A program made the position numbers and the translations under genes. A stretch of DNA of 64,000 bases from Adineta vaga. Taxonomy: Eukaryota > Animalia > Rotifera. This document shows, piece by piece, positions 55,661 to 63,779 of this stretch. The stretch spans positions 5,456,001 through 5,520,000 of the forward strand of contig CP075497.1 of the NCBI GenBank assembly GCA_021613535.1. Direction: 5' to 3'. Under the pieces are notes generated by a model. That model worked only from the letters and a program-made list of their open reading frames with translations. It ran no database searches and had not been told where the DNA came from. Position 1 is the stretch's first letter. Each line of letters begins with the position of its first letter.

Positions 55661-56144
55661 TCATGAATCTTTTTTTGGAGAGACGGCAATATGTATATTT
55701 GTTTTTGGATGTTTATCGGTTAAAACGGGTACAAATCGTTCAGAACTGTAGATGATTTCATTTGATTTATCTAATATATCACATCTTATACCATAGCAAA
55801 GATTTTCATCAATTTCACCATCATTATAATAAAGGGTAAATGGAATTGGAAAACATGTAAAATCATCTAATTTCATATTTGAAATCACATATCGAAGTGG
55901 AATATGAGGAAAATCCATACGAGCCCAGTGTAAATTTGTTATATCACAAAGAGTAATCATAATAACATCATCATTAGCTAACATAGAGCGTTTAATTGAA
56001 CAATCAATAACACCACAAAGTGTTCGTCGAACCATTTCACTTGAACTTCGAAAAAGTGTCGATGATTCTAATCATACAAACATTTGTGAGAAAAATAAAT
56101 GAATGAATGAACAATTGAATATCTAACATACTTTGTTTGTTCAT
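55661..56144 (-). CDS. YbaY/YscW-like (bacterial pilotin-type) domain protein without signal peptide
   Basis: LCGVI...DVIMITLCD...FPIPFTLYYNDGEIDENLCYGIRCDI...IIYSSERFVPVLT follows the YbaY pattern. The first exon MNKQ is joined by a GT-AG intron (~56068-56131). Confidence 0.65.
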
Positions 56145-57047
56145 TTTAAACTATAATATTCTTTGATTCGTCGTCAATACGAAGAAATTGATAGAATGAA
56201 AGTTTTAATAATTTAATCTAACACTATATATGAGAAACTTCGACACGACAAGAATCACAAACATTCAACGTTCTCAACGAGATCGTTTTCTATTTCCAAA
56301 TGTTTCTATGTGTGAAAGAAACAAAGAAATGTCAACAGATTTTTCTCTCCATTCTAGAAGGATTTTAACTTCATTAAAATATCAAAGTTGAAAAAATATG
56401 TTAAATATATAGACAGGAAATGACATTCTCCTGTTGCTTTCTCTTGACTAGAATTGAAGGACAATGATTTTCTTTACTTTGAAATAAATACACTCAAACA
56501 ACTCTATTTCATTTTAAAACATTTATATAATATTCATTTCTTAGAGAAAGCAAAAAAAAAGTACCGAAGAGAAACGAACAGATATACCTTCTATCATGAT
56601 ATTGCACAAACATTAACGTCGGCGATTGCTTTTGATTCTTGAGCAAAATTAATTTGACAAAGACATTATCTTTGCTAATTTTTCCTATTGAATTACCTTC
56701 TAAATTGCTCATTAGAGAGTATGTAGTCAATAGGAATTGAATGGTTTTGAATAGTAACAAACCAATGTTTTTTTTCTGTTCTAAGATACATAATCTAATA
56801 TAAATTTACAAAGTTTAATTTACTTCTAAGTTCATGATTTTTGATGCCGATCATATGAAACAACAATAACGCCTCCTCCTCCTCTCCTCTTTCAATTATA
56901 TTTGATACAATTAACTCTAGTAAATATCATTTTATTCTAATTATGCTATGTAAAATAGCTACAAATACTACAATGCATCTATTTCATTCAAATAAAATGT
57001 CATACAAAAAAAGGACGGATTAGTGTACTGAATAATAATCTGAAGTA

Positions 57048-57940
57048 TTAAGATAAAGTTTGACCAGTTAATTCTAGATCACGTTTATAAAGTTTTTCAG
57101 CAATGAGATTTAAATAAGATGTTGCTAGTCGCATATTAGAATAGACATTGGAAAATAGATAAACAGGAATATTATATTTTGCTTGAAACTCTTTCGCGTC
57201 ACTTTCAGTCAATACAGCAAATTGATCAAATCTAAATAGATCGAATGGAAATCATGTTTGCAAGAAGATAATATCTCACTTAGTAATAAATACTAAACTA
57301 ATAAATGGACGAGTCGTACTACATTGTTTACGTTTTTCTTCAATTAATGTAGGTAATTCATTGAAACTTTCTCGATCAGCAGCTGATACCACGAATATAA
57401 TCATATCAAGAGAATCAATTGAATCCTAAAATGAAAAGTAATTGTCTATACAAAATGTCTAATAATATAATAGCATACATCATCAATATAATCAAATCTT
57501 GTTGAACTTGTATAACCCACATCCCAAAAATCAAGACGAAACATAAATAAAGGTTTATTAGGTTGATTAACTCTTATAGGCCAATAGATATTCGTCGTTT
57601 GAATGCCAAGTGTTGGTTGAGTATTTATGGATGAAAATTCTTTACCCATCAAAGCTCGTATTAAACTTGTTTTACCTGCACCTAGTTTTCCAAGAAGAAG
57701 AATTTTATAACGATATTGTTTCACAACTAAACCAGCGGAAAGTGCTGGACTAAATAACAATGCTAAATAAAGAATAATTAGAATTCAAATGAAAAAATTT
57801 TGATTATTCTTACAGAAATCTCTTAATTGATTCTCTGTTCGATCTTTAATTGCTTTTAAATATTCTGTTGCTTGATCACTATGAATCCATTGATGATCCA
57901 AAAGAGTATTGGATTGATTATCAGTTATTAATGTTGTCAT
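57048..57940 (-). CDS. CPLANE2: Ciliogenesis and planar polarity effector 2 (RSG1 small GTPase)
   Basis: WIHSDQATEYL; YKILLLGKLGAGKTSL; TLGIQTTNIYWP; MFRLDFWDVG. Confidence 0.88.
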
Positions 57941-57966
57941 TTTCTATCTAAAATAAACGCTATTTT

Positions 57967-60246
57967 TTATTCATGTTTTCTGTTTTGTTTCTTATTCCAT
58001 CTTCCACTGAATTTTACAGTTGATTCAACAGCTGTTAATTCATCTTCTTGATGAGCTTCGATCGTATGCAATCGAATCCAACAATATATAATAAAAATAG
58101 AACAATAAATCGAAATCAATAACAAAGGTAAAAATGGTAAAAGACGATCGATATGTAATACTGAATGTAAACATTCAACATAAAGACAAAGTGGAATTAA
58201 TAGAATAATTGAAAATGTTTCTAATCGATTAAGCAATGGAAGACAGAATTTTGAACCACGATCACTAGATATTACAAATATAAATTAAATTTTTAGATTG
58301 AATAAATATGGGAACATACCCATGTATTTCACCGAGTGTATAAAAAAGAAATGTTGTATAGGCGACAAAAAGTCCAATTTTAATCGGTATTTCTATATAA
58401 AATACGAATCAATTAAGAAAATGCAAATAAATAATGATTACCAGGTCCAGTGAATATCAATGGAAAGAGTGAAAATCCACCAAATGTTGAAAGTAGAAGA
58501 AAATAATGAGCATGTTCTCGACTGTCAAATGCTAATAAACTAAACAACAACGTAGATTATTTGATTTGATCATTGAGAAGAAGATTACCTAAGTGGTATG
58601 ATGGATAATAAAATAGCTTTTTCATGAACATGCCATCCGAAAAGAAATGAAGTTAATGCACAAAGAATAATTGTTTCTAGAAATGTTCGTTTTGAACAAC
58701 GACGAAATAATCGAATTAGACTTGGCTATACAAAAGAAAGTGAATAAAATATCAATTAAGAAAAACAAATCAATCCTTACAATCATAAAGACTAATGTTA
58801 AGATAAATGTCATTGTTGGTGTAATTGAAGGTAATACTTGATGTTCAATATCTTGTACAAGACCAGAAGTCATCGATACTGATACAGAACGAACATGAAA
58901 TAGATGCGTATATCGTCCTACAAAACATATTCATATTAATTTCTACTAATAAACATTGTTTTTTCATGTTCATTTACCAGTTATAGCTAATACTTTATCG
59001 AAAACATTGTATAATGCCCATACATTAGGTGCCCAATATGCATGACAAAGACCACGTTTGAATGGAAATAACCGTGCAAGTACTTGTGGTAATTGATTCT
59101 ATTGTGAAAAATAAACAAAAAACAAATCATAAAACAAGAACGAATAGAATACCATTAAAACAAATGGACCAAAAGATAATACGAATGGAAGAAGTGTTGC
59201 TATTCCCAAAGTAATTAAATTGATTAAAAAACGTTTCCAATTTGAACCTAAATGAATATGTAATATTTAGATTCAATGAAAGAGACTTACTTTGTTTAAT
59301 ACAAAAGCCATAAAATAAATAAACAATATATGCTGGAGCAATGTAAAGAAAAATATGTTTGAAATTCAGTAATGTTGAAAACCATATTGCACTCATTAGA
59401 TATTCATTCTAGACTTTGAATTGATTATAAGAATTCGTTTGCAATGAAACTTACTCGATACATACAACTGATGGATAGTAAGAGAATACCAAATAGAAAG
59501 CCATTGTATTGAAAATGCATGTCTAGATAGAAATTAAGTTAAGGAATATGAACAAAGAGAAAGCAAAATAAAATTGATTATTTGATAGAAAAGGATACGA
59601 TCAACGATAAGTAAACCAAAATTAACCAATAAACTTAAAGCAAATATTAATTGAATAATTGGCATTGGAATATCATGATTTTTTCTACCGATTTGCATCG
59701 TTTTTAACAATCTATTTTTCATCGAAAACAAATCAATTCAAATAGATATTCGATAAAGAAAAAGTATTATTTACGAATAAATGGCTAATGCTAAAACAAT
59801 TTCACTACCAATAACAGTTAATCGTTGAAATAATTTTGTTTTTTCACTTGCATAATTTAGATTATCAATATTAAGCATAGCTGGATCAAAATATGGTGCA
59901 AGTTTTGATAAACCATACTCAAAATGAGCAAAAAATGGTGGATAATCCAATGTCCATTCCGATCGATTCTATATAAAAGAAGAAAAAAGGCCTAACAATT
60001 GATATCATTCGAATTCTTAATATTACTTCATAATACCATTGTTTCAATGGTAGACTATTCGTTAAAGCAAGCCAATTACGATGTACTTCAAAATCTGTTG
60101 AATGACTAGAAAAATACGTGATATTAAACATATATTTCTATAAATAGAGATACATACTAGCATGGTAAAAGTGATAGTTTAATAATAGCACCAATTGTAA
60201 AACTCAATGCAACGACAATTCCTTTATAATAATTTTTTATACTCAT
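57967..60246 (-). CDS. ALG8: Dolichyl pyrophosphate Glc1Man9GlcNAc2 alpha-1,3-glucosyltransferase
   Basis: [79 protein letters not shown]. Confidence 0.96.
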
Positions 60247-60313
60247 CTATAAGAGAAAATATTCGATCTATGCTTTTGTTATATTCGTATTTAATAAATA
60301 AATATATAAATAG

Positions 60314-61694
60314 TTAAAATAGATCTTTAGTATTAACAAAAAAGTCTTCGAATATATTGGCAATCATATTTGGTGTTAATTTAAATGAATCGATACTTGA
60401 TGTTGATGTTACAGCTGATTGATTATGAATATTTGTTCGATTTTCATTTTGTTTCAATAAAGAATATGTATTACGTTTTAAATTTGTTCCACTTGAAAAT
60501 TGATGTGATGATATACCTTCTTTTTGAGATGATACTCTTTCTAAGACTTTTGAATTTGTAATTCGTAACGATTCATTTCGTTCTATTACTGATTCATTCA
60601 TCGGTACTTGATCTTCTTTTATTCCTTGTCGATATAATTCTTGACTGTTAGTTTCCGTTGAAACATTTGGTAGTTGACGTAAATAATTTGATTCAGCTTC
60701 AATTGTAAATGCAATACGTATAAGACGATTTAATATATTATTTAATTCACTAATTGCATTTGCAGCAATAGGTATGAGAATGATTGAATTAGCAATAGAT
60801 GCTTGTCCATTGGATGATAAAACTGATTTCGTCGCATCACGAATATATTGAATAAATTCACGATATTTTGTAATAATCTTAAAGGAAATGTTTTTATTGA
60901 TAACCGTAGATGAATATGACATACCATACGAAAACTAATAGCTATTTCAACATAATCACTTAGATCATCTTTCGATATAGAAGAAATAGATTTTTTATTG
61001 ACTTTTATTTGTTTTGTTGGTAATTTTGCCTAAAATAGATAATGTTGATCTTGATTTTATTTATTCGAACAAATAACTTACACTTTCATCAACGTTTGTT
61101 TTTGATTTTTCTTTTTTCTTTTTCTTCTTTTTCGTTTGAAAATCACCACCATTGTCTTTAACTAAACGCATTAATAATTGTACTTTTCTATTTAATTGTT
61201 CGACTCGAACATTCGTCGAAGCAACAAGTAAAAGCGTTGTATTTGTTCCACGTGAACGTGATACACGTAATAACATCAAATTCGCCTTAAAACAAACATT
61301 CATTCTTTATCATTGATTTTCGTTTATGAAAATTACTTTTGTTCGTTTACATGATTGTAAAATACGATCAAGATAAAGATTAAGATCATATTTTAATGTT
61401 GTTGTAACCGTACAAGGTTTGACAGGAACATTTACCATACCGAATTCAGTTTTTTGTGCATCAGATGCATCTTTAAGTTGCATAGCAAGATTAACACGTC
61501 GATTTCGATCATTAAAGTGTGATTGTAAACGTATTGTATCGAAGACATTGATTGAGAAATCAATAAGATCTTCAGTTGCAGTTAATAAATCTATTCAAAA
61601 ATCAAATGATTCGATTTCAATAAATTCATAGAAATAACCTGATAAAACAAAATCCGCGGTGGGATCGCTTAAAGACGTTCTACGATCACACATG
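60314..61694 (-). CDS. Hypothetical protein (multi-exon)
   Basis: Exons MCDRRTSLSDPTADFVLS | DLLTATEDLIDFSINVFD...RILQS | ANLMLLRVSRSRG...KTNVDES | final 202-aa ORF, with GT-AG introns. No family recognised. Confidence 0.6.
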
Positions 61695-61893
61695 AAACTA
61701 AAGTCGATTCGTCATTAGTATTTTCTTAGTTTTGTATTATAGAAAAGAAGAAATCAAATAGAAAAAATTGGACTATATTAGATGAATTATTAACTTAAGA
61801 CTTTTCGCGCTTCTACCTTTCGATTTATTTCTTCTTTTCGTTTCTAAAAACATCATTTTGGATTCCTTATAGTCAACTAACATAATTGAACTA

Positions 61894-63779
61894 ATGGATA
61901 CATTGAAAACTAATGACAATTCAATAAAAGTAACAAGATTTAATTATTTGAATTTTCCATATCCTCATCATTCAAAACCACACTGTCCGAAATGTGGACG
62001 TCGTACTCGAAATCATAATAATAATCTAATCCAACATTCTTCTCATTATGATAATGGACTTGTGCAATCGAATCATAATCATAATCATATTCGGAAAGAT
62101 AGCAAAATAAATGTACTAATTGATCAATTGATTCAAGTACAACAAGTTGATAATTTTCAATGTAATCATATGTCTACCGAATAGAACCATCAAGGACGAG
62201 AAAACCCTCCAATACACTCAATCAATTATATCAAGTTCAACAAATGATTCATCTCAAACAAAACCTTAATAAGTGATATCTATAAGACGGTGAATGTTGG
62301 TGAGAAATTCGTTTGTTTTAGTCTATCCTATCGAGAATATTATTTTCCACGTGAATACATCATACTAAAACGACTGGAAGAAAAAAACAATTTTATCAAT
62401 CAAAATCGTTGTAATGTTGATCATCAACTTCGTTCGTTTCAACTTCAATATCAAACGATGAGGTTTGTTTTATTTTCTCACTTGTATACTTTTTAAAATT
62501 TTCTCTTTCTTCAATAGCATTTTACTTCAAACTACAACAATCACATCATTTATCTATTCTAAACTGGATTCATATCATCAAAGACCAATAGTCAATAAAT
62601 TAAATCAGTCTTTATCAAGGAATGAACGATCTGTTTCTACAACTGCAGAAAGAAATTTGATAAAATCACCAGAAATTCTAACAAGTACTGAGCCTTCAGT
62701 TTCATTAACTCTTCTAACATCTTCAAATGAATTAAAACAGCAGCAGCTGCAGCAACAACAATATTCTCAAAATGCGACTGAATCATACATTAGTAGTGAT
62801 TATCCAACAAATTCTTACTATGACACCGCAGTTATTGTCGATGTCAGAAAATGTTCACGAATGTCGACATCAAAAACGAATCTAATATATCCACCAATAA
62901 TACAAAACAATGGCAATATCCCTGACTCTGACACTTTTCAACAAGCATTATCTTCAGTCTATCCTTCTACAAATCAACCAATTTATTACGATCAACATCC
63001 ACAAACAATATTTCTTTCATGGCCATATAATTTAAGTCATACTCCTCATCAACAAATATCTACAAATTTTCATTACTGTAATCCTGTGATAGTAGATTTC
63101 AAAATCAAACACACGTTTGTTCTACTTAGAATTACAATGAATCAGTTTTAAATATCTCACAAGAAACTACACGATTTTCTCGTTCAACTAATTTTTCCGT
63201 TTCTGTTCATCAGTTTACTGAAAGTCAAAAATTATTATCTTATACCGATGGTGAACAACCTCAGATATTTCTACTGTTCATATGATTAGTGAAGAGAATA
63301 ATCGATCAACAAAATATACGCAAACAATGAATAAAATCAAAGAAATATTAACTATTATTCAAAAGAATTTCTTAAATAAATCAATACACAAAACTTCACT
63401 CGAACGAGAATTAAAATCCATTTCAGCTGATTCTTTAATATCGAATACGAATATACAAACAACTTATTCTGTATCTTCGACTTTATCACTTTTAAACCAG
63501 GATATGTTCCCTCTAGTATCTAGTAAATCAATTGTTAATGAGGAAAATAATATATTACAAAATGAATTAGACTCTCTCAATAGTAATCACTATTTAATTC
63601 AGAAAAATCTTGTAAATAATCGGAATACAAATCAACAATCAAGTGATGATGAAAATGATTCAAAAACATCTTTCAAGTGTATTAGTTTACAATCCCGAAT
63701 AGTAATACTATTCTTAATCATAAAAAGCTTCTTTATAATCTTACATATCTATGTAGTATTCATCTCATCAAACATCTAA
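61894..63779 (+). CDS. Hypothetical low-complexity protein(s), possible C-terminal TM; structure uncertain
   Basis: Successive plus-strand ORFs 61894-62184, 62465-63151 and 63282-63779, with a CPKC motif early. Divergent from the 61694 gene across ~200 nt. Confidence 0.45.

Follow-up and report, generated by a model that had tools for sequence, protein, structure and literature searches.

In the SL2-type operons of Caenorhabditis elegans, the intercistronic region is typically ~100 nucleotides (nt) long and recruits a specialised spliced leader (SL), SL2. A minor class of operons in the same nematode, the SL1 type, has no intercistronic region and carries an AATAAA in the upstream cistron, according to the account of Williams et al. 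1999 given in PMC1488885. In Ciona intestinalis, intercistronic DNA is absent from most operons, the trans-splice AG marks the end of the upstream mRNA and a single SL class is used (PMC1488885). Intercistronic distances of 23–30 nt have been described for Oikopleura dioica, and a distance of <250 bp serves as the working definition in the chaetognath Paraspadella gotoi (PMC1488885; PMC12460157). SL trans-splicing in rotifers is cited as known since 2005 (PMC3795323, citing Pouchkina-Stantcheva and Tunnacliffe 2005). A methods paper of 2021 states that operons and polycistronic mRNAs were not reported in Rotifera (PMC7986045), a 2025 paper makes only brief mention of rotifers as one of the lineages in which trans-splicing and operonic transcription occur (PMC12460157), and no later description of rotifer operons was found in the literature searched. 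Here we describe three genes that lie head to tail on the minus strand of a 64,000-nt stretch of the genome of the bdelloid rotifer Adineta vaga (assembly GCA_021613535.1, contig CP075497.1, positions 5,456,001–5,520,000; hereafter the window, equal to C6:5456001-5520000 of the six-contig, 100.8 Mb genome that was searched): a bdelloid gene of unknown function (393 amino acids, aa), ALG8 (539 aa) and CPLANE2 (246 aa). On architectural and comparative grounds, the locus is a strong candidate for an operon without intercistronic spacer, of the C. elegans SL1 or the Ciona type.

On balance, we lean towards the trio being a true SL-resolved operon with almost no intercistronic DNA, a reading that is stronger for the ALG8–CPLANE2 pair, the co-transcription of the first gene with ALG8 being its weaker half. 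A polycistronic unit had been proposed in a first-pass annotation of the window, made from the letters alone; its architecture, the SL genes of the genome, the conserved acceptors and a bridging RNA contig agree with that proposal, whose remaining elements (SL addition, a single precursor and a single promoter) keep the status of predictions. If the operon reading is true, Rotifera would become one of the few animal phyla with operons, and the trio would provide a conserved, easily assayed test locus. A conserved, near-spacer-less operon would bear on whether operons arise wherever a spliced leader exists, and also on how gene order is constrained in a lineage that has long been asexual and whose genome is heavily rearranged. 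The locus combines two junction designs in a compact space, an AG touching an ATG and an AATAAA 16 nt before an AG, and its added value lies in the comparative evidence and in an exact prediction of the acceptor sites.

Junction architecture of the trio

The first gene is built of five exons on the minus strand (60314–61693; exons 61693-61639, 61590-61336, 61284-61082, 61029-60925 and 60877-60314) and ends with a TAA at 60316–60314. The 67-nt spacer that follows it (60247–60313) contains an ATTAAA (60295–60290), an AATATA (60285–60280) and a pyrimidine-rich tract, ttttctcttatAG, whose last base, 60247, adjoins the ALG8 ATG at 60246–60244. The AG at 60248–60247 therefore touches the start codon, and the ATTAAA of the first gene is found 42 nt upstream of it. 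ALG8 contains 13 exons (57967–60246, minus strand), and its stop codon TAA (57969–57967) is located inside an AATAAA (57971–57966), ~16–18 nt before a conserved AG at 57949–57948. The second spacer, of only 26 nt (57941–57966), continues from the ALG8 stop as ...tttattttAGatAGaaa up to the CPLANE2 ATG at 57940; it comprises the acceptor-like motif ttttAG/at, formed by the AG at 57949–57948, and a second AG at 57945–57944. CPLANE2 contains four exons (57048–57940, minus strand). The positions of stops, hexamers, AGs and ATGs listed in the first-pass annotation proved exact, base for base, on this strand.

Both same-strand gaps between the RNA-supported gene models are below the ~100–250 nt used as a criterion for operons. 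The 26-nt spacer is shorter than every intron of ALG8 and CPLANE2 (43–76 nt) and too short to house a promoter. Removal of the introns gives an open reading frame for each of the three genes, as judged by a scripted count of frames and stop codons. The exons were joined for this count only, and the database searches were run exon by exon.

The exons of the second gene cover positions 11–481 of the Pfam profile PF03155 (Alg6_Alg8). Only two PF03155 loci are found in the genome; the other, on C2, matches yeast ALG6 (6snh) at 6e-12, whereas the gene in the window matches it at 0.016 or not at all. Since the sole other PF03155 locus matches ALG6, the window gene is ALG8 by exclusion, that is, the dolichyl-P-Glc:Glc1Man9GlcNAc2 alpha-1,3-glucosyltransferase. 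The third gene encodes a small GTPase with matches to the Roc and Arf Pfam families. Its GTPase exon matches the CPLANE2 chain 7q3e_D of the PDB at 7.9e-15 and other small GTPases (Rab, LRRK2 Roc) at 1e-4 or worse, and its orthologues or nearest named relatives in many animals carry the source name CPLANE2/RSG1. Both gene names had already been assigned in the first pass and are borne out by these matches. Searches of Pfam and the PDB yielded no match to the first gene, look-ups in the ESM Atlas gave nothing usable, and its homologues, searched at exon level, are restricted to bdelloids; the description of the trio as functionally unrelated genes stands as far as this gene allows.

Compared with the SL1-type operons of C. 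elegans, the upstream poly(A) site and the downstream trans-splice acceptor would likewise be adjacent, a canonical AATAAA is present upstream (here 16 nt ahead of the AG, in overlap with the stop codon of ALG8), and resolution of the unit would rely on the general SL rather than on a specialised leader. The locus differs in belonging to another phylum with an unrelated SL sequence, whose use here is predicted, and its first junction may keep a short true spacer. The earlier suggestion that cleavage and trans-splice sites almost coincide, as in that class, fits the ALG8/CPLANE2 junction, with its AATAAA–AG distance of ~16–18 nt, and is less easily extended to the first junction, where 42 nt separate the ATTAAA from the AG. 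The same-strand, functionally unrelated genes are also reminiscent of Ciona, although the poly(A) signals of the upstream cistrons there seem in most cases to be different ones (PMC1488885), whereas an AATAAA-type hexamer is found here. Very short gaps and genes of a housekeeping type are shared with Oikopleura and with the chaetognath, the latter having no operon-specific leader; those systems were validated by SL reads genome-wide, whereas here a single locus is described by its architecture and conservation. Regarding the SL2-type operons, the co-oriented unrelated genes are a common feature and would be resolved, as there, by trans-splicing coupled to 3' end formation; with spacers of 26 and 67 nt, and with one leader family searched, the locus does not resemble them.

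Conservation of the cluster in other bdelloids

Comparison loci were fetched through protein look-ups, and all of them are bdelloid. An ancient duplicate within the A. vaga genome was ruled out as a test of conservation, all three genes being single copy. Eight loci from other bdelloids show the trio with identical order and strand: Adineta steineri (L019), Rotaria sp. Silwood1 (L014, where the first gene and exons 1–8 of ALG8 were detected), Rotaria sp. Silwood2 (L020 and L021, one place in two assemblies), Didymodactylos carnosus (L017, with ALG8 remnants) and four further bdelloid contigs from ENA and Logan (L015, L016, L018 and L030). The gap between the first gene and ALG8, 67 nt in the window, measures 48, 59, 22, 36, 89, 64 and ~55 nt in the other loci in which it could be measured (22–89 nt), and that between ALG8 and CPLANE2, 26 nt in the window, measures 33, 38, 23, 36 and ~35 nt (23–38 nt), L030 being included in both series. 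Gaps of 22–89 nt are too small for a promoter, in agreement with the earlier remark that the genes lie with no promoter space between them. The spacers vary in length and sequence and cannot be aligned between genera; the recurrence of the tight layout in eight loci despite this divergence is more than chance. Gene order and gap, whose conservation in related rotifers had been named in the first-pass annotation as a way of checking the operon, are thus both kept.

Within these divergent spacers, the acceptor-like sites are constant. An AG directly touching the ALG8 ATG is present in 8 of 8 bdelloid loci, and a pyrimidine tract followed by AG/AT (ttttAG/AT) is found 14–23 nt past the ALG8 stop in the six of six loci with an intact junction. 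Because the position of this AG/AT is conserved across the loci, the first AG of the window's spacer (57949–57948) is the conserved acceptor; the first pass had correctly marked an AG at this place, and the site is now refined from the AG nearest the ATG to the first one. A third AG is located 4 nt before the ATG of the first gene (61698–61699, minus strand), within a motif, cgaYtt(t/c)AG-NNNN-ATG, that is conserved in the four loci where it is readable (window, L019, L015 and L030), and may serve the first cistron as a trans-splice acceptor. An AATAAA-type hexamer lies at, overlapping or after the ALG8 stop in most loci; in A. steineri, L015 and Rotaria sp. Silwood2 it is an ATTAAA or AATAAT placed at the stop or overlapping it. 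The upstream genes keep their stop codons in all loci, the coding exons are conserved at 75–97% protein identity among bdelloids, and the NCBI annotation of A. steineri and Rotaria sp. Silwood2 calls three separate genes. The nearest conserved neighbour on the same strand is 0.5–1.1 kb away, and the flanking conserved genes are spaced at similar distances, whereas the trio is always packed within tens of bases.

Several loci show peculiarities of their own. In D. carnosus (L017:4440-5666), only six of the 13 ALG8 exons are detectable, at 39–75% identity and with too little room for exons 1–3, and no NCBI gene is annotated there, the first gene and CPLANE2 being intact on either side; the ALG8 copy within this conserved cluster appears to be in decay. 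L015 and L016, both from ENA ERZ26165376, are two diverged copies of the whole cluster on separate contigs with the same flanking TPR and YscW-like genes, and could represent ancient duplicates in one bdelloid or two species. ALG8 intron 1 is 0.7–0.9 kb long in both Rotaria species (L014:8022-8965 and L021:2594-3323), compared with 52 nt in the window; most of the other introns at these loci are short, and the intergenic gaps have stayed tiny. The CPLANE2 of Rotaria sordida (P0205) is annotated with 354 aa, ~108 aa above other bdelloids, possibly because the tiny gap led the gene model to run on into the end of ALG8. Two further proteins were rejected as relatives: P0034, a vertebrate RhoGEF-GTPase fusion, and P0035, from an organism of 23–25% GC content with no ALG8 upstream.

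Spliced leader, transcripts and competing explanations

The published 22-nt rotifer SL (PMC3795323, Table 1; 3' part ...CTTACCAAGAG) was used as the query for the one leader family searched, and yielded 59 matches in the genome at ≤2 mismatches, against 0 for the reversed control. In one copy that was inspected, a GTAAAT donor follows the SL exon. Together with the published use of the leader in rotifers, these matches show that the organism has SL RNA genes and employs SL trans-splicing, a criterion for operons of this kind. The SL RNA genes often form head-to-head inverted pairs, with leader starts ~154 bp apart (e.g. C1:2551160-2551336), and are heavily clustered on C5 at 9.88–9.93 Mb and 10.91–10.93 Mb; variant leaders with A for C at position 10 or at position 13 are also present.

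The RNA evidence consists of assembled contigs of four public runs (three studies), aligned to 56600–62300 of the window. All 15 introns of ALG8 and CPLANE2 (12/12 and 3/3) are spliced out in these contigs, with GT..AG ends and lengths of 43–76 nt, and the four runs are therefore RNA; the first-gene intron 61285–61335 was also observed spliced. In run X12, a contig of 2369 nt, spliced throughout, extends unbroken over 57814–58264, a region containing the ALG8 stop, the spacer and the CPLANE2 ATG. If the ALG8 mRNA ended and the CPLANE2 mRNA started at the AG, the two would share no 31-mer, and the bridging contig would need RNA that crosses the junction; DNA contamination is an unlikely source of it because the depth of this run is 0 in the silent stretches 56600–56790 and 61948–62300. 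Dicistronic cDNA clones and SL-bearing full-length expressed sequence tags are available for Ciona (PMC1488885), whereas here there is one bridging contig; none is shown for the first junction among the contigs of the four runs. The ALG8 contig of run X2 extends one base past the conserved AG and ends there, at 57947; this base is an A, followed by a T, and no poly(A) tail was read. An end at AG+1 is the graph branch point expected for poly(A) added at the AG, and mirrors the 'AG + poly(A)' pattern of Ciona (PMC1488885). At the other end of the cluster, the CPLANE2 contigs end at 56911–57006, past the AATAAA at 56936–56931, with depth 0 over 56600–56790 in all four runs, which places the end of the transcribed unit there. 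The contig depth, a poor measure of expression, is ~5 for the first gene in all runs, 11–43 for ALG8 and 9.5–20 for CPLANE2 in the three runs with a CPLANE2 contig of its own, ALG8 and CPLANE2 being within 1.1–1.4 fold of each other in three runs. Neither exon 1 of the first gene nor the divergent gene upstream of it is covered by a contig in the four runs, and the AG at 61698–61699 is likewise without RNA evidence.

In an operon of this kind, RNA polymerase II would initiate upstream of the first gene, probably at a single promoter, and would read all three genes, halting past the ordinary AATAAA of CPLANE2. At each junction, the poly(A) signal at or after the upstream stop would direct 3' end formation at a predicted poly(A) site, and the AG that closes the pyrimidine tract immediately ahead of the next ATG would receive the 22-nt rotifer SL. 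The predicted acceptor of ALG8 is the AG that touches its ATG, and that of CPLANE2 is the AG at 57949–57948, which would leave a 7-nt leader. At the ALG8/CPLANE2 junction, cleavage and trans-splicing would take place on the same or neighbouring bonds, and one precursor may give the upstream or the downstream mRNA, but not both. The chances seem to us evenly balanced for a broader proposal, namely that bdelloids have spacer-less SL operons, that the trio already formed such a unit in the last common ancestor of living bdelloids and has remained one, and that ALG8 cleavage and CPLANE2 trans-splicing compete for the same AG; the dating follows from the fact that Adineta, Rotaria and Didymodactylos all keep the trio.

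Several observations weigh against an operon. The wider gene order is kept as well: the divergent gene is conserved upstream of the first gene in A. steineri and L015, and on the downstream side three more genes of the same strand are retained, so that order alone is not specific to operons. The ATTAAA of the first gene, at its 42 nt from the AG, is far for coincident cleavage. The bridging sequence of X12 is a de Bruijn contig and no proof of one molecule. No SL is listed at either AG in the assembled contigs of the four runs, although this absence says little, because the table of loose ends omits short unaligned ends such as the five letters of the X2 contig. Scans of metagenomes for the SL joined to the ALG8 start, and for the SL followed by 0–20 nt and the CPLANE2 start, gave 0 matches each; both are uninformative, since rotifer mRNAs of low abundance are unlikely to be assembled in metagenomes. 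Finally, the depth pattern, read with the caution that contig depth demands, hints at uncoupled levels of the first gene and ALG8, which could be explained by competition between polyadenylation and trans-splicing (PMC1488885) or by an internal promoter.

This last possibility leads to an explanation that we regard as rather unlikely, in which the three genes are tightly packed and independently transcribed, the promoters of ALG8 and CPLANE2 being inside the 3' exons or introns of the upstream genes, and the SL being added onto the conserved AG to remove a short outron. The conserved acceptors are equally well explained in this way, the depth of the first gene does not track that of ALG8 across the runs (for what depth is worth), and the bridging contig could derive from outron-bearing transcripts that start within ALG8. 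In D. carnosus, moreover, CPLANE2 is intact ~2 kb from the first gene with only ALG8 remnants between them, so that CPLANE2 can function without a tight upstream partner. Such promoters would nevertheless have to sit in coding exons conserved at the protein level as given above; they offer no obvious reason why gaps down to 22–23 nt are kept in several lineages, and the ALG8 and CPLANE2 depths are close to each other in three runs.

It is less probable still, and in our view improbable, that the trio consists of ordinary overlapping genes without trans-splicing at this locus, with capped starts in the upstream gene, overlapping 5' untranslated regions (UTRs), and AGs that reflect start-codon context or chance. 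No SL junction was seen in the contigs or in the two metagenome scans, the genome is compact, and overlapping UTRs could account for the bridging contig of X12. However, the retention of a pyrimidine tract and AG in every locus, within spacers that otherwise diverge, is the signature of a 3' splice site rather than of a start-codon context, no cis donor to either AG appears among the listed joints, SL RNA genes are abundant in the genome, and the X2 contig of ALG8 stops at 57947 rather than entering CPLANE2. The resemblance of the acceptors to normal 3' splice sites would also suit cis-splicing in read-through or fusion transcripts, with a donor of the upstream gene joined to the start of the next gene. 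We consider this highly improbable: the 15 listed splice joints of the four runs (three further joints lie beyond those listed) are all internal introns, none of which ends at 60247 or 57948 or otherwise enters either junction AG, the upstream stop codons are conserved throughout, and separate genes are annotated in A. steineri and Rotaria sp. Silwood2.

Flanking features and details of the contigs

Upstream of the trio, a region of ~200 nt (61694–61893) separates the ATG of the first gene on the minus strand from that of a divergent plus-strand open reading frame (ORF), and is a candidate shared promoter. The only RNA depth at this candidate region in the four runs, seen over 61757–61947, is an artefact due to an unrelated contig that shares 19 nt by chance. 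The loose ends at 58509, 59631, 60862 and 61846 were rejected as alternative 5' exons, being chance matches of 18–19 nt to unrelated transcripts that map to C6:6.70 Mb and C4:3.53 Mb. The CPLANE2 contig ends at 57941 in runs X1 and X2 were rejected as RNA 5' ends, as they represent an assembly bubble caused by a single-nucleotide polymorphism at 57911. Over 57027–61423 of the window, 37 single-base differences between contigs and reference are shared among the runs in differing combinations, and several contig ends are located exactly 31 nt from a variant position, which identifies them as assembly bubbles and not RNA ends. A low-depth contig of run X12 (61264–61600) retains the first-gene intron 61285–61335 and reaches into intron 1 by 10 nt, so that unspliced RNA of the gene can be detected.

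Downstream, the 3' UTR of CPLANE2 (56911–57047, minus strand) is of the ordinary type, and the next same-strand gene begins ~0.9–1 kb further. An ORF of 124 aa (55661–56035, minus strand), ~1 kb downstream of CPLANE2, matches the Pfam family YscW, a lipoprotein chaperone domain of bacterial type III secretion, with an E-value of 1.9e-4, just under the family cut-off. The YscW-like ORF is found at the same position in five other bdelloid loci, at 62–68% identity, and may be a horizontally acquired gene.

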